Assembly (NCBI GenBank): GCA_964247055.1
Contig: OZ176051.1
Span: 12,896,001 to 12,960,000 of the forward strand
Length of the DNA stretch: 64,000 nt
Reading direction: 5' to 3'
DNA from: Paragordius varius
Taxonomy: Eukaryota; Animalia; Nematomorpha
Position numbers and translations under genes: made by a program
Shown: piece by piece, positions 36,401 through 59,389 of the stretch
Layout: every line of letters starts with the position of its first letter
Position numbering within the stretch: position 1 is the stretch's first letter
Notes under the pieces: model-generated
The model's input: the letters and a program-made list of their open reading frames with translations, nothing else
Database searches by the model: none
Told to the model about the DNA's origin: nothing

Positions 36401-39400
36401 ATGAGCGTTATTTTTGCGTTTTACGAAAATTTTAATCTTCTATCTTTTGCCATACTTATCTTATCACTTATAATTTTGTATGCCTTTAAATGGTCTGATT
36501 CCTCTAAATTTGTAAGTGGTTTTTATCTATAATATTGAAAAACCCAAGCCTACAATATTGTTAATAATAATTTAATATTTTTTGTTTAAAATAGAATGCG
36601 AAGGAACCACCTATTATCCCGTCCTACCTGCCATTTTTTGGCCATATGTTTGCATTTGGAAAAGATCCGCTCAATTTTTTGCTCAATGCATACACAAAAG
36701 TAAATTTTAAGACCTTGTTTGACTTCAAATGGTACTTTGTCCTATATTTCACAAGGATAAATAAATAATAATAATTAAAGTTAAAATATAATTTTGAACC
36801 GTATTCAAAACTATTTAACTAACTGACATGGATACAAAAATCCCATTTTTAACTAGACATGAAATAAGTATCATTCCGGTTGTTTCCCTCTCTTATCCCC
36901 ATATAGTTGGTCTAATTATCCGCATCATATTTTTAAAAAATATGCCAAATTAAATATAAATTTTACGCATTTTTGAAAAAAATATCAATATAAAAGGTTT
37001 AAATTGGACGTATGATAAAGGTTTATAATATGTCTTACCTAATAAACTTCTATATCGGTAAAAACTTCAAATTTTCTACACCTTAAAAATAGAACCTTAT
37101 ATAAAAATCTATAAATATTATAATTAGCATGATATAATTAGTTTGTAGGCCGTGTATATTTACAAATTAATCTATTTAACAAAAAAAGTCTTTTTCTTTT
37201 TATTTCATATATTTAGTATGGGCCAGTCTTTACGTTTACCATGTTGGGAAAACGGTTTACGTATTTGTGTGACAGTGATGCCATTTCCCATTTCTTCAAT
37301 GCCAAGAATGAAGAGTTAAATGCCGAACAAGTGTATAGCAGTTTAGTTACGCCCGTTTTTGGTTCTGGTGTAGTTTATGATGTCCCTCATAATGTAAAAA
37401 TTTTGAAAATTACTTTGATTGCTTTTTAAATTATCATATACACAGTCTAGTTTTATCATTTTTAAATGGTTTCGTGGTCAAGCATTTACAAAATATATAT
37501 ATATATATGACAATTAACAAATATTTGAAAATATTATTTAGTTACGCCCGTTTTTGGTTCTGGTGTAGTTTATGATGTGCCTCATAATGTAATTACATTA
37601 CTTAACTTTTTAAATTATCACACACAGTTTAAACTAATCTTATCATTTTTACATATTATAGGGTAGAGGTGAAATGGCTTCGCGGGCGAGCATTTACAAT
37701 ATATATATATGACAATTAACAAATATTTGATGATATTAGATTTTTAAGATAAATAAAAGACTTTAAAAAACTACAATTTATTTAAACACTTTTTTTGCTA
37801 GTTTATTGCCAAATTTGGGGAAAATATATTCAGAAATTGTTGTTTTGTTTAACATAATCAATTTTACTTTGATTTCGTTTAAAATATCATATTTAATCGC
37901 GGTCGTGTTACTTGGGAGAATTTTCTACATTATCGATTTACGACAAATTTTACCCAATAATATATATGTCAGTCTTTCTTTTTACACATTTGCATTGTGA
38001 ATTAGCAAAAATTAATTTATTACTTCTTGGGTGTTTCTATCAACATTTTTACTAGTTGAACTAATATAAATTTCATATCAAATATATTTTCTGTAATTTC
38101 AGTTGGTTTTTTTCACCTATCATCCACAATTTACAGAAAACTGAAATTAATCAATCAATCAATTTTTGCAGATTTTCATGGAACAAAAAAAGATGATAAA
38201 GAATGGCTTGATTCAAGCACGATATCGCGTTCATGTACCCATCATTGAACGAGAAACGTTGGCTTTCATTTCACAACACATTTTACCACCTTGTGAGGGA
38301 TCGCGATCGTCGTTAAAGACTAAAATTGAAATTAATATACTGGAACGGATGGCTGAATTGATTATTTTCACATCTTCGGCTTGTTTAATGGGTATTATAC
38401 TAATTAAAAATAAGTTACAGTATTTTTGGAATTTTGTTAACTGGGGTACCCACATTCCATGTGGCAAATTTCAGAACTGTTTTATTATTATTACTAACGG
38501 TATTATTTATTTTCATAGTTATTTTGGTATTTTTTATTATTCAAAGTAAATATCAAAAAAATATAGTGTATAAAAGTGTAAATAGGAAATATTATCAAAG
38601 TTGAATTATTATTGTTATTTGAGATGTTGATAAGGTTTTAGTGTTCTATATTATTATACTTCATGGTTTATTGAGGCAATTTTTTACGTATCACATGCCC
38701 TTGTGTTTAACTAATGATTTTACAGATCATTAGAAAACTGGCCTTTGCCGTTAGCGCATTTTCATGCCCCAGCCAACACCACGGGGAGGTGGCAATAGGA
38801 CTTTATTGGCCGGGAGGTGGCAATAGGACTTTGGTAACAAACACTCTTAGCCATAACAATATAGATATATGTTGCATCCAAGAGGCCAGAATGAAAGGAG
38901 ATGGATTGAAAAACTTAGACGATTATACACTATTCTATAAAGGAAATGACAAGGCCAAGGTGGTGTTGCGATTTTCATTAAAAACATCGATCGTGATAAC
39001 ATAATTGATGTAATAAGACATAATCCAAGAATGATTCAAATAAAAATATTGATGAATGATAATGTAATAAATATAGTTTCAACTTACGCACCACAATCTG
39101 GTCTAAGCGAAGCATCAAAAAACGAATATTGGGAAGCCCTCTATGATTTGATGAACAAAACTTCTTCTGAACAAACTTTTGTTGGTGGTTTGCCATATTA
39201 ACAATGATAGTAATGAATTACATGGCGTGCATGGTGGAAATGGCGTTGGAGCCCTCAATAAGATGGGCGAGAGTTTGCTGGACTTTTGCATTGAAAATCA
39301 ACTCATAGTCGCAAATACCCATTTTAAGAAAAAAAACCAACCAGCATATAACTTTTAATTCCGGTGACCACTCATCTATGATAGACTTCATATTAATTCC

Positions 39401-42400
39401 AAAAAAAACTAGGAAACATCTAACAAACATCAAAACTTACTATCAATCCTCTTACCAACACAAGCTAATAACAGCATTTCTAATCATTGAGAAAAGCCGT
39501 AAGACCGCATTCCAACATCAAAAAATATATATAGCAAAGTTAAAGGATTCAAAATTATTAACCGATTATACCAAAAACACAGAGTTACATATACCCGAAC
39601 GAAACAATGTTGAAACTCTATGAAAATTTTAAAAGCACAATTCTAACAGCTGCCAAAAAACATTGTGGCTTTACAAAACCAATGAGGCAACGGAAAAGCT
39701 GGAGGTGGAAAAATGAAATAAAACCATTGTTGCGTGAAAAAGGCGAAGCATATAAAAAATGGAAAAGTTCCAAAAATAATGATGATAAAAGAGTTTATGA
39801 TGATAAAAAGCGAGAGGTCCAAAAGGCCATTCGACACGCTATGAATGAAAAATCCGTTAAAATCGCTGAAAGTTTAGAAAAAGACTTTAAAAACCAAACG
39901 ATTTTTAAAAGACTTAAAAACCTTAACAATAGTAATAAAGATGTTAAAACCATAAAATGTATTAAAGATGAGAATGATTATATAATAACGAATCCCTCGA
40001 AAGTCAAAGAAATTTGGAAAACGAACTTAGAAAAACAATTCAACCAAGTAAACCCGACCAAACAATTTAGCATGGTTTCACCAGTAGCTGGTCTCATACA
40101 AGAAATCACGATAGATGAAGTCACAACTGCAATTAATAAATTAAAAAGTAACAAAGCTCCAGGCCCAAGTTCGACCTCATTCGACCCATCAAAAACACTG
40201 CAGAGTATCTGACAAAACTCTTACCAAATAATAGTTACAAACCAAACTTCCAGCGATTGGAAGAACAGCATAATAATCCCCATTTAATAAAGGCGATCGA
40301 CTAAAAACATCGTCCTACCGACCTTTAAAACTTCTGGAACACACACTGAAATTATTCGAAAATATATTAGAAAACAGGCTGAGAAAACATATCAACATAG
40401 ATTCGAATCAGTTATTCCGTCCAAACAGTAGCACAATAGATCCCTTGTTTATCCTAAGACGCTTACAAGAAAAATATCTGGAAAAGAAACAAAAGCTATA
40501 CCATGTCTTTGTAGATCTGGAACGTGCGTTTGACCAGATACCACGCTCCACAATTCAATGGGCACTACGTAAAAAGGGAATAGAAGAACACACTATACAA
40601 ATCTTATTACTACTCTATAAAAATACAACAACCAACGTTAGAACCAATATCGGCAATACAAGCAATTTCCCAACCAATGCTGGACTACATCAGGATTCAG
40701 TCCTAAGTCCACTCCTTTTTATAACTATAATGGATGCGGCAACGCAAGACATAAGAACTGAATGCCCTTGGGAAATGTTATTCGCCGACGACCTCGTGAT
40801 AACGACACGATCATGGGATCAAATGGTAAATACATATACCAAGTGGAAGAAATGCCTTGAACAATATGGAATGATTATAAACGCCACAAAAACAAAAATA
40901 ATGATAACGGGTGAAAGTGAAACACCCAGATACCCCTGTTCCATTTGCAGTAAGGAAGTACGTTCGAATTCCATTAAATGCATATCATGTCAAATGTGGG
41001 TAAAAAAGTGCTCTAATATAAAAGACAAGTTAACAATAATAAATTTTAAATGTTTAAATTGCTTAGACCCAAGCAATAATAATTTTAATCGACCAAAGCT
41101 ACTTATTATTGATGGACATGACATCGAATTGGTTGACTCTTTCGTATACCTAGGAGATGTCATATCGTCTCAGGGAAGCCCACAAAAGGCTATCAAAAGA
41201 AGAATACAACAAGGTTGGATAAAATATAATCAGTTAAAATATGTTTTCCAAAACAAAAATGTTAACAATCGTAATAAATGGTATCTTTACAAGGTAGGAA
41301 TAAGACCTGCTCTTACCTATGGTTCTGAAACCTGGGCATTAAACAAAACAAATCAAACAAACCTCCTAACCAGTGAGAACCGAATACTCAAAAGCTGCTT
41401 TCGCACACCAGAATTACCAATTTTCATTTAAAAAACCGATAAAATCGATTATATAATTCAAACTAACAGATTGCGTCTATACGGTCATACTCAAAGAAGA
41501 GACGCCACATATCCGTTAAAAACTGTTGAAAACATTAATGTTGATGGCAATAGAAGAAAGGGACGACCACTCTTTTCTTATAATGATAATATAAAAATGG
41601 ACTTGAATCAACGTATCCTTTCCACAGAACAATGTAAAGATCGTAATTTATAGAGGAAACTACTTCGTGAATACAAAACTCCGAATATGGAGTCCTAAAA
41701 TTATCCATTTATTTTGGAAATTTTCTGGCATTTTTAAATACTAAAATTTTACAATAATTTTTTTCTACAGTTAAACAATGCAAATTGTGACTTTAAACTT
41801 GATATTTAGTTTTTCTGTTTAATTTTGCTAACAATTTCATAAAATGTAGTTTAGATTATAACCAATAGTTGTTTTTTATCCATTTATTCAAAAAAATTAA
41901 ATGTGTCACGTATGTTTTAATATAACTTGAACCACACATCTGGAAAAAATAAGATAAAGATAATGAATATTTTGGCATTAATTTTTAAAATGGTAAAATA
42001 TTTTCTCAAAATAAGATACAACGAAATAGAACTATTAAAATTATATATTACATTCATTATACGAATTTTTAAATATTCTATATAAATATGTGTAAAACCA
42101 CCATCTATTTTATTTTCGTTTTTAATTAAAAATTATTATTTTAGCAAAAAAAATTGTTGAAAAGATTATTCGTTTGTGGTATTAAAAATATGATTCACAT
42201 ATATTTTTGCACACTCTGACAACTAGTGATTTTCTTTATCCAATACTAGATATTAAAATTTTAAAACACCATATAAATTTATAAAATGTAAAAATTTAAC
42301 ATAAGAATGATTTTTAATAACGTAAAACCATATTTTTTAACCGGCTTGTTTTTTTGTTGAACTATTGGTTAGGATGGTAAAACAGAAATGTAAATTTGTT

Positions 42401-45400
42401 ACTAAATTATATATATCACAGTAATTGATAAAAGTATATAGCATAAAAAATCAAACTTAAAGATTAGTTTTTTTGACATTTTTTATATAAAAAATTCGAA
42501 AAATTTGCTTATACTTTAAAAGGTAAGGAGGCTAGACAAGCTCTAACGAAAGAAGTTGCTCAATGGTATGCCGATTTAGATGGCGGATTTTGTATTGAGG
42601 CCTGGTTATTTCCTGAGTGGATGCCTTTCCCTGCATTTAAGTAAGGTTTTTTTTTTCAAAACTCAAATAACTTAAAATTATCAAATTTGCAAAATATTAA
42701 AGGTAAATAGATTTTTAGCTTTATGTTTCACAAAGCCTATTTGAATTTCCTTTGCATTTAAGTTGGCTTTTTTATGAAATTAGGTGTAAATTTTTAAAAA
42801 ATGAAAAAACTTTTTAAATGTATTGGTTTTAACCTGAAATATTTTTTTACCGTATAAATTATTTGTAGTTAAGAGTTCAGAAATATGGGTGTTTAAATCA
42901 TATTTTATGGTAAAAATGGTAAAATAATTATATGTTGTTTCTTTCTAAGCCTATTTTAGCATTTAACACCTTAAATTTCCAATATTTACTATATCCACCA
43001 TTAAATAACATGCTTTTCTATATATATGGCTGCTGCGATCACGTTAAATACAGTATGAGTAAGTATATAGAAGTTTATAATTATTGCCAAATAGTAAATA
43101 CAACAAAGGGCAGTATTATTGGCTAATATTAATAAAAAGTGAAAAAATAACTATAAACCAATATAATACTGCCCCCTTTGTTGTAATTCCTATTAGACAC
43201 AATAATTAATAATTTTCCAACAATGTGTACTTACTCCTATAATGTAATTTATTAATAACAAGTCTTAATTAAGCTTTAACAATTTCATTTTTTGTATTAT
43301 ATTTATTAGGAAGCGTGATATAGCCCATTTGAAGATTAAACATTTATTCCTACACATTATTGCTAAACGGAGGAAAGAAAAGAATTTATACCATTTACTT
43401 AAGCAAAACAATTCCACCATCCAAAATGGAGAACAAACGAATGATAAAGACTTAATTTTAGAAGATTTTTATAATAACCCCGTGTCTGATAATGATGAGA
43501 ATGCATTAGATGAAAGTACAACAATTATTATTCTTGTTTATTACATTTTCAAAAGTTATATTTGGAAAAAAAATTGCTTCTTTAAATAAACCATATTTTT
43601 TAATTTTACAATAACTATCGTTTTGGAAGTAACGAAATTCCAACATCATAGTCCTTAAATATTTGTCCATTTTATGTTTTGTCCGTATTATATCAATTTC
43701 AGTATACAAAACAAGAATCCAATAAGCAATGTGGTTTTATTTATGTAATGAAAGCTTAGCAATGTGGTTTTACTCTCATACTGTATTTATTTATTTTGAT
43801 TTTTTTATAAGGTATAAAAACCTTAAATTGATAATAGCCAATATGATTGATACTTTCATGTTATTGTGAAAGAAATTTCTCATTTTTTTAGAAAACTTTT
43901 TGAACATAGATTATAATTGATAATAGCCGATATATGAGAAAACTGTTACATTAGACCTATTAACTATAAAAAGAATATTTCTTTTATGTTGTACCTAATC
44001 CTCTCTAAAAGCTGACAATAATTTTAATATTTATAGATATATATTTATATATATCATCATCATCATCATCAAAATTTCAAATTCACCCTCGAACAATTCA
44101 CATACATCCTAAAATAAATTACGTGTTTTTTAAGAGTAAAAATTATCTATATTTTTTATATTTTTAAAAACATCAAATTTTATTTATCAGCTAAAATACT
44201 GTGGTAAATCGAGAAACCGTAAAACAATAATATTTATTGAGATAAAATACAAAAACTAAACTATATAAAGTTTGCCATGTTTATATACTTTTTGTGAATA
44301 TAATATTTACATGTTAAACCAAGGTAAAATAACATGTGCAGGTCAAATACAAAATTGATACAATAGTTTAACTCAAATATAAAAGGTCATCAAAAATGTA
44401 TTCAAATCTAATATATAAATTTGTCTAGTCAGGTTAGCTAACTTGATGTATTCAAATCTATCAAAAAGAAAAGCACATATCCCTCAAAACAAAAGGCTTA
44501 TACAAAATGTGTATAAGACCAGTTTTGACATATGCCGCAGAAACCATGGCATTAACACAAACTCAAGAGAAACTTTTCATCAGTGCGGAAAATCACATAC
44601 TACGCCTGATGTCAACGCAACTAAATCCCCAAGATATCCGCAATCACATACAAATGGAGCCCATAGACAAATGCATTCAATTCAAACGAATGAGGTACTA
44701 CGGTCACTTTGACCGTATAAATCCCGACAATCCGATCAGGAACTCATTGGACATCATTCCACACCCGGTAACAATAAGCCCGGTCGTCTACGTTTAACCT
44801 GGACTAAAAAGATTGATCTGGATTTCCAACAATTCAAACTGCTAAAAACAGATTGTATTGATAAAGAATTATTTCATACAAAGCTGGATAGCTGTTATGC
44901 AAATCGGAAAGATATACTTTATTTTTATATCATATTTTTCTGTGTTATATGCAAATGTGAAATACATACCTTGCTTAGATATCATAACTTTCACCGTATT
45001 TGAATTGTATTATTTTTTATATTTTTTGTGTTATATGTAAATACATAACCTTTGTTACTTGAAATTTTATTGATATAATGCAAATCATGGACAATCAAAA
45101 TTGCTATATATACACCCTAAAAAACCTAATAAATTCAGTTCATTTCACATTTCTTTTATTTATCTCTTATCTTAAAAGATAACATTGGTGGCAATTCGAG
45201 TATCGAACTAATCTAACAACTAATCTAACACAACAGTGGAACCTCCGGGTTCCAAATTCGGATGGAGAGTCCAAAGTTCCACAAGCATGACAATGTCAAT
45301 TGCCAATATCACCAGCATGTCCAGTAAAAAATTTAATGATAATACCAATTAGAACAATGGTAATAATTTTTCGATCACAACAATCAACCTCTGACACATT

Positions 45401-48400
45401 CGCGCAAGGGTTATGGGAGTGTTCATGGGCCAAACAAATGTCCCGCCTGGAACCGCAATTGCAAATGCGGAAAACCCAACCACTTCGCTAATGTAGATCA
45501 AACTGCCAAAAAATGTTCAACCGCCATTGCACTGAAAGCGAACGGGCTAATAATCTCTAGCAACATTGAAATCATTATCAACAAATGGCTGGGGAGGACT
45601 CCCACATCATTCAACATTTGATGGATGGGTAAGTAAGATTGGCGCGGACAAACTTGTTATAAGATTGATCGGTAAGACGCCTACCTCCCCAGGCCGAGTT
45701 AAAGCTACACCTCGACGATTTCAACAATAAGAGTATGTGTCAGTTACAAAAGGACACTGTTTAGATTCGTTACAGCGCCCATAGTATATCAGTGCGCCTG
45801 GACCAGTTTCAAAGGAATGGTCTAGGGTGGCAGGCAGAGATCAAATGAAACACATCGACACACATAACATAGAATGTTATCTTTCAAACTAAGATTCGTC
45901 GACACACCCACGACACCGGTCACTCAAACAATAGTAATGATAATGATCACGACAATAACACTAATATTAATGGTAACATTATTGATAATAATAACATAAT
46001 AGCAATAATGACAATATCAATGAAAATCCGCACGAGCGTCGTTACCCCGAGAGAATTCGGCGGAAGCCGGTCCGGTTCTCTTAAGGGGGAAGTGATGTTA
46101 TGCAAATCGGAAAGATATACTTTATTTTTATATCATATTTTTCTGTGTTATATGCAAATGTGAAATACATACCTTGCTTAGATATCATAACTTTCACCGT
46201 ATTTGAATTGTATTATTTTTTATATTTTTTGTGTTATATGTAAATACATAACCTTTGTTACTTGAAATTTTATTGATATAATGCAAATCATGGACAATCA
46301 AAATTGCTATATATACACCCTAAAAAACCTAATAAATTCAGTTCATTTCACATTTCTTTTATTTATCTCTTATCTTAAAAGATAACAATAGCTTATGATG
46401 GTGCACCATCAAAGCTTACTGTTAAACAACAACAACATTTATATAATACTGAAAAAATAATAAATTATGCCATAAGAATATATTTTATATATGATGAGTT
46501 ATATTCACCCTAAAATGGTGAATTTGAATTGTTTAAGGGTATATTAGAATTGTTCGAAGGTGAATTTGAATTGTTCGAAGGTAAATTTGAATTTTCAAGG
46601 GAGAATTTGAATTGTAATGGTATATATCTACATTGATTAATTTTCTATAATTAATTAAATCGATATGATTGATACTTTTATTATATTGTTAATAACAATT
46701 CATTTTTCAGAAAACTTTTTAAATATATCTCAAATGTATTTGAAATGATTAATTTTCTATATTGTTTGATATAATAGCTGATATGATTGATACATTTATG
46801 TTGAGTCGTTACAAGAGTGGACGCTATACTACGGATGAGGAAATTGCTAAACTTATGATATCCCTCCTTATGGCTGGTCAACATACCTCATCAACGACGA
46901 GCTCTTGGTTACTCATGTTTTTGGCAAAACATCAAAATATTCAAGTTTTTTTTCCTTTTTAAATTTTTAACCAGACTTTTTTTCATCAAAAAAAATATAT
47001 ATGGGAAAATTTATTTTTTGATTAACGCAAATGTGTGAAATCTTTGTTCGTTTGCAGAATGTAATAGTAAAGCAAAAAAAATTGATAAAATAGATGGCTC
47101 ATTAACAATTTTGAAATAAATAACTACTGTTAGGACGGCAGCATATGACAGATTTTTTTAAAAGTAATCTTTCCCCCAAAAAACTTTCCAATCTTATGTT
47201 ATTAATATTTAATATATTTGGAAACAATATTAAAAACCATTTTTTGAATGGCTGATTTTTAGGTTTAGTTTAATTACAAATATACTTCGCCTAAAAATCA
47301 CGGGGTTATAGGCAACTGCATATATATAAGCGGCATAGACTTGTGCTATTAGTTAAATCTTTTAATCTGCTAACAAATATAATTTTTCTCCATTTATTTT
47401 GTTTTTGATGTTGAATATTTTACTATTCTTTAAAATACAACATTTGTATTGTAATAATTTTACTTTTTATTTGTTATAATATATACCATTTACAGTTTAA
47501 ATCCACCCTCAAATTCAAATTCACCCTAAAATAAATGTTTTTTTTTAAATGATGAGTTATATTAGTCTGAAATATAATTTAATTTTAGGGTGAATTTGAA
47601 TTGTTCAAGGGTGATTTGGATTGTTCGAGGTTGAATTCGAATTGTTCAAGGGTGAATTCGAATTATAAATGGTATATAATAAGCATTTATAACCAAATTA
47701 TAGTTTTTTATATGGTTTATCTATATTTGAATCGAAATTCCCTCCCCCCACAAATAAATTTTTTTATATTGTAGGAAAAATTGTATGAAGAAATTATGGA
47801 GCATTGTGACGTTAAAGACGTTGATAGTTCAGACCCAACCAGTAAAATTTAAATATTTTTATAGATATATTTTTTTCCGGATAGCAAAATCGTTTTAAAT
47901 ATATAATTTTCTTAAATTTAAATATATATATATTGCTATTTTAACCGAGATCAATTTCATTAGTTTTTTATATGGTATGTTTTGGTTTTTTGAATAAATT
48001 TATATTTGTATGCGACTATTATTAGCATTGCATTTAGATATTTATTATTATTATAACCAATTTTTATATAAAATACTCATCTTAGCTATTTGTAGATTAA
48101 AAATAACCACACTGTATTATCATTTTTTTATATCTGAAGATATGAAAAATCTGTTTTTAGCAATTTGTTTCTTATGTTATAATTCAGTTAACGAAAGATT
48201 TAAAAACTTTATGATCGAACTTGCTGTCACCTATTTTTTCGATATTAATGAAAACTGGTCTTTTTTTCTCCAAAAATATCAAATTTAAGATTACACTTTC
48301 TAGGACCATATATAATATAAATTGACTCTATAACTTTTTATAATTTTACATGTTTATAGCTGATGTCAAATATCGTCTTAAGGGCCTAGATTTATCGCTT

Positions 48401-50881
48401 GATAAACTACGGAATTTGGATTTGTTGGATCGTTGTTTGAAAGAAACTTTGAGATTAAGGCCACCCCTGTTAACCCTAATGCGATTGTGTAAAAAGGATA
48501 TTGACGTTTCCATTTATAATGGTAAATATATTTTCTGATTTTATTATTAACTTGGATTGCTAATAAATGAAAATTATTGTTAAAAGTTTTTCCAATGTTC
48601 ATTTTTTATTTGTTCTTCAGACCTTTTGGGATAGTTTTATGGCAAAGGGCTATATAAAATTTAGATATATTTAAAAAAAAATATTTTTTCCATTGGACCA
48701 AATTTATAAATATGCTTTCATTAGCCCTTTATAGGCGCATGATGCTAAAAAATTTTATAAATATTATAAAATTGTAAAAAAATCCGTATACCAAATTTTT
48801 TTTCCCCCATTTTTTTCTTTAATTTTTATGATATCATGAATACAACAGGCAAAAATATATATTATGGTTGTAAAATATAAATAATTAAGGAAAGCTTTTA
48901 GATTGCAATCTAACCAGCAATTTTTTGACAGTTATCGATTTTAATATCAGCTGTTCGTTTCAATCGTATTCTGAAACGAACTGAGTTTGGGAATTTCGAA
49001 GTCAAAAAAATTGTAAAAATTTTAAGAGTTTCTATCAAAGACAGGAGTAGAGGGTTTAATAATTGAATTTTAACCGCAATAACTTTTCAAAACAGTAGTG
49101 TGCTGAATACTTTAAATTTTGGGCTAGAGAACTACCCCAAAATGTTATCACCTACTAAAAAAGGAAAAGGTCATAAAGTATTAATTCAGTTTAATATATA
49201 TATATATATATATTGAGTCTAATTTTTCGCAGACCTGTTAATATGTGTATAGGTTAAAAAAATAATTGTTTAAAGGTGGTAATAATTCGTGATTTTTGTA
49301 AGAGAAAGATATATATAAATTATTTATTAACTAAATATACATCCTTAAAATATACACTAAAGCCCCATTATTGGAAGATTATATATACCATTTACAGTTC
49401 AGAAGATACCCTCGAACAATTCATAATTATCCTAAAAATTATATGTTTTCGAACTAATATATTATTAATATGATACACATCTTTATAGCATAGTTTAATA
49501 TTTTTTCAGCATAAATTTAATTTTAAACAAAATTACATTTTTTTAATAATATATTAAAATACAGGTAATTTTTAATTTTAAAAACACATAATTTATTTGA
49601 GGGTGAATTTGAATTGTTCAAGGGTGAATTTGAATCGTAAATGGTATATATCTATATATTAATCACGATTCTTTAACCAAAATTTGCAGGGAAAAAATCG
49701 TATACTATCCCACAAGGTTATCAAGTGTGCGTATCACCAACTTTTACACAACAGTTGCAAACTTATTGGGGACAAGGTCTCAATGCCCATTTTAATCCAG
49801 ATAGGTATTTAGAATTTAAATTTTTTTAGTTAGAATTGTTAAAATTTAATCAATCTATTTTTATGTTAAAAGCATTGTAATTTGGCATTCAGTTCTTTGA
49901 AATTCGATTGTAGTTTTGTAATTTTATTAACATCAAAAAATGTAAATGGAAAATTTGTATTGTAAGAAAAAGTAATGTAATTGTATATAAGATGTTTCAT
50001 GCTGATATCAATAATATTTAGTTTAATTTTTAACCTGTTGAGTATCTATTGTAAGACATTTGTTTTGGTAAATGATAATTGTGGAGTCATTAATAGCACA
50101 TTCTTTTATACCATGTACACAATATAGTCGTGGATTTCCGTTTGCTCTTTAAGTGTTTGGTTTGGCTTCTTTACACTCCTATGTTTTAAAAATTACTATA
50201 AAATTTTCAATTTCAATTCTTAAATTTGCCACAAAAATAAATATGTACCTTTTAATTATTTTATTTTTTCACCATAGATTTCTCCGTAAATCTATTCAAG
50301 ATAACGTTGATTCAATAGTTTCACCGACCAATTGTGATGGAAAAACACAAAATATTACTTGTGATAAGAATGAAGTTGGCAATGGCCATAAAATACAGGA
50401 CGAGCCTTCAAAATGTCCGTTTGCTGCTTTGAGGCGGACAACAGCCTCGAGTTTTGGCAAATTATTTGAAAAAAGTTTACTTCTAGGTCTGAACTCTACT
50501 TCAGAAATGTTAGTCAGTAAAGAAAATTCTAACAAGTTTCAACAAGACCACCCTAAAACTATAGAAATGGATGAAATGAAGTTGTCATCATCACAAAATC
50601 TGGAAAATGATGCGGGCGGAAGTACGAAATATGCTTATTTCCCTTTTGGGGGTGGTAGGCATAGATGTGTGGGTGAGGCCTTTGCCTACGTTCAAATTAA
50701 AACGCTGGTTGCTCTGTTAATCACAAATTTTAAATTTACGCTAAATATGGGTAATAACAATCCCTCCTCCGCCGTGCTATTAGATAATCAAGATCCTTCA
50801 CTGCATATCAATTATAAAACGCTTATAAGTACCCCACTTAAACCGATGATTGCGTTAGAGCTGAGACGCCGCAATCTATAA
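36401..50881 (+). CDS. CYP51: Sterol (lanosterol) 14-alpha-demethylase, cytochrome P450 family 51, 11 exons, ~683 aa
   Basis: Exons 36401-36511 (TM anchor), 36595-36699, 37217-37393, 38172-38391, 42523-42640, 43310-43515, 46778-46944, 47775-47841, 48360-48521, 49690-49804 and 50278-50881. All GT-AG and phase-compatible (2052 nt). Motifs: [16 protein letters not shown] (SRS1), AGQHTSSTT (helix I), ETLRLRPP (ExxR), [16 protein letters not shown] (heme Cys). Confidence 0.95.
37342..37730 (+). repeat. ~190-bp tandem duplication of the 3' end of CYP51 exon 3 plus its donor site
   Basis: 37342-37528 is repeated at 37537-37730 (tttagttacgcccgtttttggttctggtgtagtttatgatgt.cctcataatgtaa...). Confidence 0.9.
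38560..41690 (+). mobile_element. RTE-like LINE in CYP51 intron 4; body on + (38833-41690) with an inverted 5' segment (~38560-38811)
   Basis: [66 protein letters not shown]. The 5'UTR blocks shared with the 29745-33027 copy lie on the opposite strand to the ORF. Confidence 0.9.
38745..38811 (-). ncRNA. HDV-like self-cleaving ribozyme (second, covarying copy)
   Basis: GGCCAAU(P1) AAAGUCCUA UUGCC(P2) ACC UCCCCGU GGU GUUGGCU(P1', G1.U wobble) GG GGCAU-GAAA-AUGCG(P4) CUAAC GGCAA(P2'). Compensatory changes in P2 and P4 relative to the 33027 copy. Confidence 0.92.
43079..43207. repeat. ~130-bp imperfect hairpin (small foldback element) in CYP51 intron 5
   Basis: aattattg..tacaacaaagggcagtatta-ttgg pairs with ccaatataatactgccccctttgttgta..caataatt. 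Confidence 0.6.
44440..46430 (+). mobile_element. 3' fragment of an RTE-like LINE, interrupted by the LTR element
   Basis: [22 protein letters not shown] at 44507-44797. It resumes after 46392 and ends in a (caa)n tail at ~46425-46435. Confidence 0.75.
44893..46387 (+). mobile_element. Recent non-autonomous LTR retroelement (TRIM-like, 1495 bp)
   Basis: Two 292-bp LTRs (44893-45184, 46096-46387; TG...CA) with no difference found by eye. 5-bp TSD atagc, PBS-like tggtggca, PPT aagggggaag. The 911-bp interior holds only gag-knuckle and integrase-tail remnants. Confidence 0.95.
47481..47677. mobile_element. MITE family B copy
   Basis: atataccatttac...gtaaatggtatat-type TIRs with gggtgaatttgaattgttcaa subrepeats. 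Confidence 0.7.
49381..49650. mobile_element. MITE family B copy
   Basis: atatataccatttacag ... cgtaaatggtatata ends. Confidence 0.7.
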
Positions 50882-52649
50882 TTTTAAACCTTCACAGTTT
50901 TTGTAGATTATTTATTTTATGTTTATCGCACACCAAATATTGCTGCTTATTTGCTCATTTTGATGTATGTATATGTAGATTTTTTGAGTCAACTATATAT
51001 AATGTGATATCACCTACCACTATATACAACATCTTTAACATACATTGTTTAATAACATTTTTTAGCTTTTTTATTCACAAGCATATGCGCCCAATAATTT
51101 GTGATAATTAGCATTAAATTTTTTCAATGGTGCATCATCTATTTTTATAACAATTTATTTTTATTATTTCGGTACTATTAAATATTTTCACAAGGTCGCT
51201 TTTTGTACAGTTTAAATTGAATTTATACAGACAAATATAATAGCTTGAGGATTTTTACAGTAAAAATTGAAATTATATGGACAAAACGTAAAAAAAGAAT
51301 TTTTTAAAAGATTACCATACTTTTTTAAACCTTTTATCCTATAAAAATCATTCAAATACATTAATAAATGTGCTACCAATTTACATTTCCATTTAATACT
51401 TTTCACTTTAATGAGTTATAGTAAAAATATAAAAAAATATGTGCTCTTTTGGGAAAAAATATTGTCGTTATATTTTTACGTTTTGTCCGTATAATTTCGA
51501 TTTTTACTGTGTAAAAATTCAACCATATAATTAATTCTAGATTTTTAACTAAAAACTTATTGTTTTATGTTGCAAAATGAGAAATAGATACTTCAATTAG
51601 TAACAAATTAAAATATTTATATAATTGTAACGAAATAGTCTATGTAAAAAATATAAGGTTTAAAAAAGTATGATTGCCTGTTCTTAAACACATTATTTAC
51701 ATTTTGTCTGTATAATTTCATTTTTTAACCGTTATTTATACTTAATTGATACAGCTTAATACAAAAATATTTAGTAATGAATTATTTATAGTTTTGAAAT
51801 TGTTAATTTATTACATTTTTTCACATATAAAATTTTTTATATAATTCATTTTTACCACATCCACATAGTCAAACTATGATCTTTAAATATTGAGCTTAAT
51901 ATGTTCCATTTTTTTCATAATTGCATTTTTAAAACTGTAGTTTTAATAAAATTGTGCTTCTTTTTTATGAAATTTAGTCATTAATAAATTTGAAATATAT
52001 ATTTTCATCGATAAAACCAAATATTAAGTTGATATCACAAATCTCTTTTTAACAATAAGGTTGGTATTCATTGTTGTATTTTACATAGTAAAATAATATT
52101 AATAAATTAAGGAATATATTACATTTAAATGATAAAACCATAGTAAAATCTACATATAGGTCAATTTATATATGTATGACTTTCATAAACATATCATAAT
52201 TATTAAATAAAATAATATTAAAAAAATAAATTACTATCATTCAAAAAAGTATTGATATCTATCAGATTTAGAATAATTGATCTCCTGATATAAAGATAAT
52301 TTAAAAGATATAAGGTGCAAAATTACCGAAATTAATATTATCTGTGGTAATTACAACTTTGACATTTTCTGTTTAATTTAAGGTTTCGAATGATAAAAAT
52401 TATGTTTTATAGCCTAATACATGAAATTTAAACATTATTATCTAAATTAATTAATCTCCTAATTTTTAATTTTGGCAGTAGAAAAAAACGGAATTTAAAG
52501 CAATAAAATGTTTGGGCATTTTTTTAAATCCCTAATAAAACATTTTATTTAAAAAAAACATTATATTTGATTTGTGTGGTTTATAGGGCCAGGTATATTA
52601 GTCCAAAGAATTAATTAATTATATAATATAAGCTATGCCTTATTATATC

Positions 52650-57772: not shown

Positions 57773-59389
<1,617 letters not shown>

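Follow-up and report, generated by a model that had tools for sequence, protein, structure and literature searches.

A 64,000-nucleotide stretch of the genome of the nematomorph Paragordius varius (assembly GCA_964247055.1, contig OZ176051.1, positions 12,896,001 to 12,960,000 of the forward strand), here called the window, holds a gene whose sequence identifies it as CYP51, the predicted sterol 14-alpha-demethylase. Directly before the heme-binding loop of this cytochrome P450, the last exon contains an insert that makes the loop far longer than in the non-nematomorph animals surveyed. Its variation marks the insert as a tether that evolves fast, almost freely over most of its length, except for one island that varies as the core of the enzyme does. 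Within the island lies SKCPF, a short linear motif built around a Cys-Pro (CP) pair, and the codon differences suggest that the motif and some 30 neighbouring codons are very probably under purifying selection at the protein level. The features on which the argument turns are the following, in window positions:

50278..50881, + strand: last exon, with insert, heme-binding loop, C-terminus and TAA stop (tiled over 50274-50866 by contigs of sequencing run X3, see below)
50279..50626, + strand: the insert, 116 codons separating PDR from KYAYFPFG, some 106 residues more than other animals have there (open frame, spacing survey)
50363..50461, + strand: constrained island, insert codons 29-61, with only synonymous differences listed in the sister lineage
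50408..50422, + strand: SKCPF, Cys-Pro short linear motif, identical in Gordionus (orthologue comparison)
50627..50674, + strand: heme-binding loop, axial Cys codon TGT at 50666-50668 (reading frame)

The frame that encodes the insert is open from 50153 through the TAA at 50879-50881, with the codons of the insert beginning at 50279, while the remaining two frames of the insert hold 7 and 14 stops. When the insert DNA is shuffled, an open frame survives in 1e-4 of trials for the window and in 1.5e-4 for Gordionus, the other nematomorph genus compared here. In GC fraction the insert (0.365) resembles the remaining last exon (0.396) and differs strongly from the upstream intron (0.227). Loop spacing was measured across the fetched sequences, counting from R[FWY] in the PERF-like motif up to the F with which FGxGRHxC begins. 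About 150 animal CYP51s have a spacing of 15-16, fungal-type CYP51s one of 28-41, and no other sequence exceeds 50; the window CYP51 reaches 121 and that of Gordionus 114. An earlier reading of the letters alone, the original prediction, had announced an insertion of about 106 amino acids with its 116 codons in one open exon, and both frame and spacing survey bear it out. The nonapeptide EPSKCPFAA lies exactly where it had been placed, at 50402-50428, and the three cysteines counted in the insert are indeed there, at codons 19, 28 and 46. The picture needs correcting in that the insert is not confined to this genome, the Gordionus CYP51 carrying one at the same place; the upstream exon, moreover, ends at 49804 rather than 49805.

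Is the insert retained in the mature messenger? The sequencing runs X1-X4, mapped on window positions 46600-51400, bear on this question; X3 and X4 share one sample. None of the four comes with a recorded kind, and X3 is RNA-like by its behaviour only. In X1, X2 and X4 introns and exons are covered alike. The depth of X3 runs in the hundreds over every exon of the segment, including the small exon near 47800, and is zero or near zero in most intron bins outside high-copy repeats (0 at 48049-48370; 0.07 and 0 at 49820-50141). One X3 contig, record 18, is 370 nucleotides long, with 230 of them on 50274-50500, and differences with a contig depth of 387.9, equal to that of record 18, also appear in exon 10. 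In our reading, record 18 is a spliced contig that passes from exon 10 into the insert. Beyond it, records 19-22 overlap each other as far as 50866, and record 17 lies only partly on exon 9. Five further runs under the same species label, X5-X9, guessed to be RNA, contained none of the sampled words. The X3 contigs list no joint and no deletion of more than 3 letters inside the last exon and are collinear across it, so that the cryptic intron feared at the outset was not seen. The insert is very probably real and expressed.

That the insert, or most of it, is nonetheless spliced out through an unrecognised intron or an alternative acceptor, leaving a short mature loop, is very improbable. Any in-frame AGN codon within it could in principle act as an alternative phase-2 acceptor, and minor isoforms are invisible in contigs. 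Opposed to this are not only the collinearity of the exon-only X3 but also the open frame kept in two genera, at a chance of about 1e-4 each, the protein-level constraint inside the insert set out below, and the candidate acceptor GGA AGT (50614-50619), which has no pyrimidine tract. Small in-frame candidate introns picked out by eye, such as one of 33 nucleotides (GTAAAT...ATAG, about 50286-50318) and one of 24 (GTTGGC...ACAG, about 50376-50399), were discarded since the exon-only X3 has no such deletion. An origin of the insert by a shifted acceptor was rejected as well: the ancestral R-F/Y-L still follows the intron, and the CYP51 open reading frame (ORF) fragments of other animals start at the same R-F/Y-L. 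The phase-2 intron between exon 10 and the last exon has the same position in Gordionus, whose insert also lies within a single last exon (RefSeq model). Other animals share this position too, which makes the intron ancient and places the additional residues within the exon.

An exhaustive phmmer search with the last exon against 1.84 billion representative proteins returned a sole near relative, the CYP51 of the horsehair worm Gordionus sp. m RMFG-2023 (P0001). Its full-length form (P0269, XP_065324567.1) has 651 residues, and an isoform of 599 residues also exists. Across the 479 columns shared with a vertebrate CYP51, window model and Gordionus protein have the same residue in 352 (73%); the Gordionus protein is 45-53% identical to animal CYP51s, the next-best relatives standing at about 50%. 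By this measure the window belongs to another gordiid nematomorph. Word searches with the Gordionus CYP51 and the window last exon gave no further nematomorph sequence, and the window ORFs are themselves absent from the protein collection. No protein among the 1.84 billion representatives aligned in phmmer to insert residues 1-85. The Gordionus gene is already annotated as “lanosterol 14-alpha demethylase-like,” while the insert and its conserved motif appear to be undescribed. Tardigrade CYP51s are also among the matches to the Gordionus protein.

After the Arg, the two inserts count 116 residues (window) and 109 (Gordionus), and their global and local BLOSUM62 scores are no better than those of shuffles. 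The idea of a conserved module was therefore dropped. The original prediction had spoken of a module; the insert is no folded one but low-complexity, unalignable between the genera and mostly low-confidence in the structural model of the Gordionus protein. This AlphaFold2 model, built from a 50-sequence alignment, has a confident core (mean predicted local distance difference test score, pLDDT, of 82.8; predicted template modelling score of 0.81). In the insert the pLDDT falls to 42-44 (residues 461-490), 59-66 (491-530) and 46-51 (531-560). SKCPF (518-522) occupies a loop that connects helix 490-506 with helix 521-534, both of low confidence, at a pLDDT of only about 64.

What the two inserts do share is SKCPF, so that the conservation of a CP motif in relatives, on which the original prediction had laid weight, is found in the only orthologue available. 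The codons read TCA AAA TGT CCG TTT in the window and TCA AAA TGC CCT TTC in Gordionus; all three differences between them are synonymous. A second view of the same region comes from the X3/X4 sample, filed under the same species label, which differs from the assembly by about 4-6% in exons over 46600-51400 and has in-frame insertions and deletions (after 50760, for example, TCC). The sample probably represents a haplotype that has diverged deeply, or else a cryptic sister species, and we refer to it as the sister lineage. Mislabelled species are reported in a preprint for Chordodes, another genus of nematomorphs, with no link to this sample shown. Only the best-supported differences from the assembly were translated, and in the sister lineage they fall as follows:

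insert codons 10-28, upstream of the island: 8 codons with a replacement, among them Cys28 to Ser, and 1 synonymous
insert codons 29-61, around the motif: none but synonymous changes (at Asp41 and, in another contig, at Leu51)
insert codons 62 and 94, downstream: replacement
codons 117-200, P450 core: 5/5 synonymous

No sister-lineage difference is listed within SKCPF itself. Among the three cysteines of the insert only that of the CP pair is conserved, Cys28 being already Ser in the sister lineage.

Could all this be a neutral low-complexity expansion tolerated by a surface loop, with the shared SKCPF a residue of homology or a product of chance? Much about the protein invites the thought. 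When the two nematomorph CYP51s are aligned with vertebrate and brachiopod CYP51, six surface-loop expansions prove common to both, several of them rich in Asn, Lys, Ser and Asp, and the insert is by far the largest of them. The two inserts are unalignable above shuffles, fungal-type CYP51s also hold 28-41 residues at the site, and a shared 5-mer of any kind turns up in 1.7% of shuffles. Such expansions recall the low-complexity insertions of Plasmodium and Dictyostelium, with which they share an AT-rich genome (the GC fraction of the window is 0.23-0.37, with many retroelement ORFs), expansion in several loops and a fast turnover of the inserts. A constrained island, however, is unexpected in a purely neutral expansion. 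KCPF had been named before the Gordionus orthologue was seen, and it appears in just 2.7e-4 of Gordionus-insert shuffles; of the five motif codons three differ, all of them synonymously; and the sister lineage is rich in replacements just upstream of the island and purely synonymous around it. We consider neutral expansion unlikely.

If the motif is constrained, what is it for? Established knowledge and a survey of mammalian heme-binding proteins describe the heme regulatory motif as Cys-Pro followed by a hydrophobic or aromatic residue, often with a basic residue before (PMC10377097). The K-C-P-F at 50411-50422 meets this pattern, and in Gordionus it is extended to K-C-P-F-H. The original prediction had taken KCPF for a motif of the heme-regulatory type carried by a module with three cysteines: pattern and conservation stand, the module form does not, and the other two cysteines are unconserved. 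According to the same survey, the usual place of CP motifs is a loop that connects two elements of secondary structure (PMC10377097); the predicted setting of SKCPF resembles this, which at the low confidence of the model is suggestive at best. From the sequence, heme may be the ligand of SKCPF in vivo, with a likelihood that we put somewhat short of even, which still makes it the reading that we favour. A full-text literature search found no paper linking a heme regulatory motif to CYP51 itself.

SKCPF might instead be a functional short linear motif with another ligand. It could dock a partner such as cytochrome P450 reductase (CPR), cytochrome b5 or a protein of the PGRMC1/Dap1 type, serve as a degron for turnover associated with the endoplasmic reticulum (ER), or present a redox-switch Cys or an S-acylation site pinning the loop to the membrane. 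The constraint on SKCPF says nothing of the ligand, and a low-confidence flexible loop, as the model has it, is a typical place for linear motifs. One paper reports that PGRMC1 interacts with P450s, and mentions CYP51 (PMC4802085). On the other hand, the motif agrees with none of the docking or degron consensus sequences known, its five conserved residues are all compatible with a heme regulatory motif, and the other cysteines of the insert are not conserved. A non-heme ligand is a possibility to be taken seriously, if a minority one.

Should heme be the ligand, the following scheme can be proposed. In P450s the loop that joins the PERF-like motif to the Cys pocket lies on the proximal face. 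A disordered tether, long enough to reach this face, would carry the Cys-Pro motif, and the motif would be exposed to the cytosol together with the remaining catalytic domain. There, next to the ER membrane, the Cys thiolate of SKCPF would most likely bind labile ferric heme transiently, and the motif-bound heme might then be handed to the apo-enzyme, loading the P450. Alternatively, the motif could change CPR docking or the stability of the enzyme when heme is abundant, as is reported for the motifs of heme oxygenase-2. Such a built-in heme sensor or capture arm, a CP pair on a tether of 45-75 residues next to the Cys pocket that would either supply the apo-P450 with labile heme or restrain CPR docking or stability, and so tie sterol synthesis to heme supply, is a tentative proposal and is put forward as such. 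Autoinhibition, and the coupling of sterol synthesis to heme status, are pure inference.

Several points weigh against reading SKCPF as a constrained heme motif in an expressed insert. A CP dipeptide arises by chance in 10% of shuffles of the window insert and in 7% of those of the Gordionus insert. The His at +3 of the Gordionus motif (CPFH) is Ala in the window protein, and conservation of the motif rests on two genera and one sister lineage. As to expression, the kind of X3 is not on record and contigs drop minor isoforms; the joint 49804/50278 is itself absent among the X3 rows listed, and one difference and a 3-letter insertion in X3 record 18 are unplaced.

How does the arrangement compare with known systems? 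SKCPF also stands in the third heme regulatory motif of ALAS1 (SKCPFLAA), and the CPFH of Gordionus in IRP2. ALAS1 and IRP2 are unrelated proteins of other compartments, ALAS1 being mitochondrial, and in both the motif serves heme-dependent degradation; a five-residue resemblance to SKCPF is a lead, not evidence of homology. Another counterpart is heme oxygenase-2, where a heme regulatory motif comes near the flavin mononucleotide domain of CPR and, once heme is bound to it, reduces activity in vitro (PMC11900463). It is an ER-anchored, cytosol-facing, CPR-dependent heme enzyme with Cys-Pro on a flexible segment outside the catalytic core, features that are predicted for the window protein as well. 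It differs in having two CP motifs, disulfide-capable, in a C-terminal tail, whereas the window CYP51 has a single conserved CP in an internal loop. The loop of fungal CYP51 (Erg11) is in the same place of the same enzyme, on the proximal side, and is 28-41 residues long. That of the nematomorphs is 3-4 times longer, arose in an animal lineage and shows no sequence similarity to it, and none of the fungal-type CYP51s sampled has a Cys-Pro in this loop.

A separate observation concerns P0261, an intronless CYP51 from a compact animal genome (assembly ERZ25072730 in ENA, L002 6001-7503). Its loop at the same place has 29 residues and contains GACPAKF, the only other CP in the loop among the fetched sequences. 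P0261 was tried as a deep nematomorph relative and set aside, the tree being an unresolved polytomy with a long branch, and it is not used as evidence.

Sterol synthesis is known to be absent from arthropods and nematodes, which are sterol auxotrophs, whereas the nematomorph retains CYP51 in apparently intact form. For P450s, the classic thiolate-heme enzymes, both the acquisition of heme and the question whether activity senses the labile heme pool are poorly understood. If the heme reading were true, this would be the first P450 known with a heme regulatory motif. A CYP51 with a tethered Cys-Pro beside its Cys pocket would offer a model for both heme acquisition and heme sensing by P450s, and it would extend to the P450s a logic known from heme oxygenase-2, in which motifs of this kind tune an ER enzyme that depends on CPR. 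With regard to the protein itself, the insert clearly exemplifies how a short motif under constraint can emerge within loop expansions, here those of CYP51, that evolve fast.

The identity of the gene rests on its complete model, which lies on the + strand with 11 exons, encodes 683 amino acids with zero internal stops and has GT-AG borders at every intron. The model is splice-aware and was guided by the Gordionus CYP51 protein (P0269); its coordinates are window positions. Besides the last exon given above, it comprises:

36401..36511, + strand: exon 1, start codon and N-terminal membrane helix, a hydrophobic stretch (splice-aware model against Gordionus P0269, GT-AG intron)
36595..36699, + strand: exon 2 (tblastn, 80% identity to Gordionus P0269; model)
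37217..37393, + strand: exon 3, B' helix signature (model)
38172..38391, + strand: exon 4, lineage-specific expansion 1 (model)
42523..42640, + strand: exon 5, preceded by a 4.1-kb intron holding a reverse-transcriptase element of the long interspersed nuclear element (LINE) type (model)
43310..43515, + strand: exon 6, expansion 2 of about 40 extra residues (model; the 3' boundary is the least certain of the model)
46778..46944, + strand: exon 7, I-helix signature (91% identity to Gordionus P0001; X3 depth here and none in the flanking intron bins)
47775..47841, + strand: exon 8, part of expansion 3 (model; X3 depth 181 in bin 47727-47887)
48360..48521, + strand: exon 9, K-helix ETLRLRPP (model; X3 contig record 17 on 48377-48522)
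49690..49804, + strand: exon 10, ending in FNPD and the AG of an Arg codon, phase-2 donor AG/GTATTT (model)

The Arg codon of FNPDR is thus split AG/A, with the donor at 49804/49805 and the acceptor CATAG/A at 50277/50278; the sequence directly 5' of the last-exon start at 50278 is CACCATAG. CYP51 enzymes are recognized by the B' helix motif Y..(L/F)(T/V)PVFG.GV.YD, the I-helix motif (A/G)GQHTS and the K-helix motif ETLRL. The B' helix, I-helix and K-helix (KETLRLRPP) signatures were all found in the exon model. The last exon alone matches PF00067 (p450) with an E value of 1e-11, has lanosterol 14-alpha demethylases as its best matches in the PDB, and contains the heme-binding signature FxxGxRxCxG of the P450 fold at 50639-50674.

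Part of exon 3 has been copied in tandem: 37342-37520 and 37537-37722 are identical at 147 of 179 bases, and the copied segment takes in the last 55 or so nucleotides of the exon, its donor and the start of the intron. An “exon echo” with its own GTAA donor is thereby left inside the intron. The LINE-type element in the 4.1-kb intron 4 covers 38700-41650 and lies in the sense orientation, with endonuclease and reverse-transcriptase ORFs of up to 328 amino acids. Upstream of exon 7, a decayed copy of its start (28 of 32 bases) is found at 43831-43862. In intron 6, two 292-bp direct repeats, 44893-45184 and 46096-46387, are 100% identical and 1.2 kb apart; they look like the long terminal repeat pair of a very young small element. 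Gordionus is more compact, its L001 3001-3724 holding the same CYP51 exons as window 36401-38391. One intron there measures 43 nucleotides, and further very small introns probably lie within L001 3149-3724; the corresponding window introns have 83, 517 and 778 bp, with lengths of up to 4.1 kb farther along the gene.

A family of short repeats, whose units translate as GEFELFKG, occupies 47405-47726, 49498-49658 and 51108-51400, that is, introns of CYP51 and the region just 3' of its last exon. Their summed contig depth is 1e5-6e6, against hundreds elsewhere, and many false joints in the reads table belong to them. Farther downstream, the ORF at 59009-59389 encodes the C-terminal 126 residues of actin (PF00022, E 1e-52) and is presumably the last exon of an actin gene that follows CYP51.

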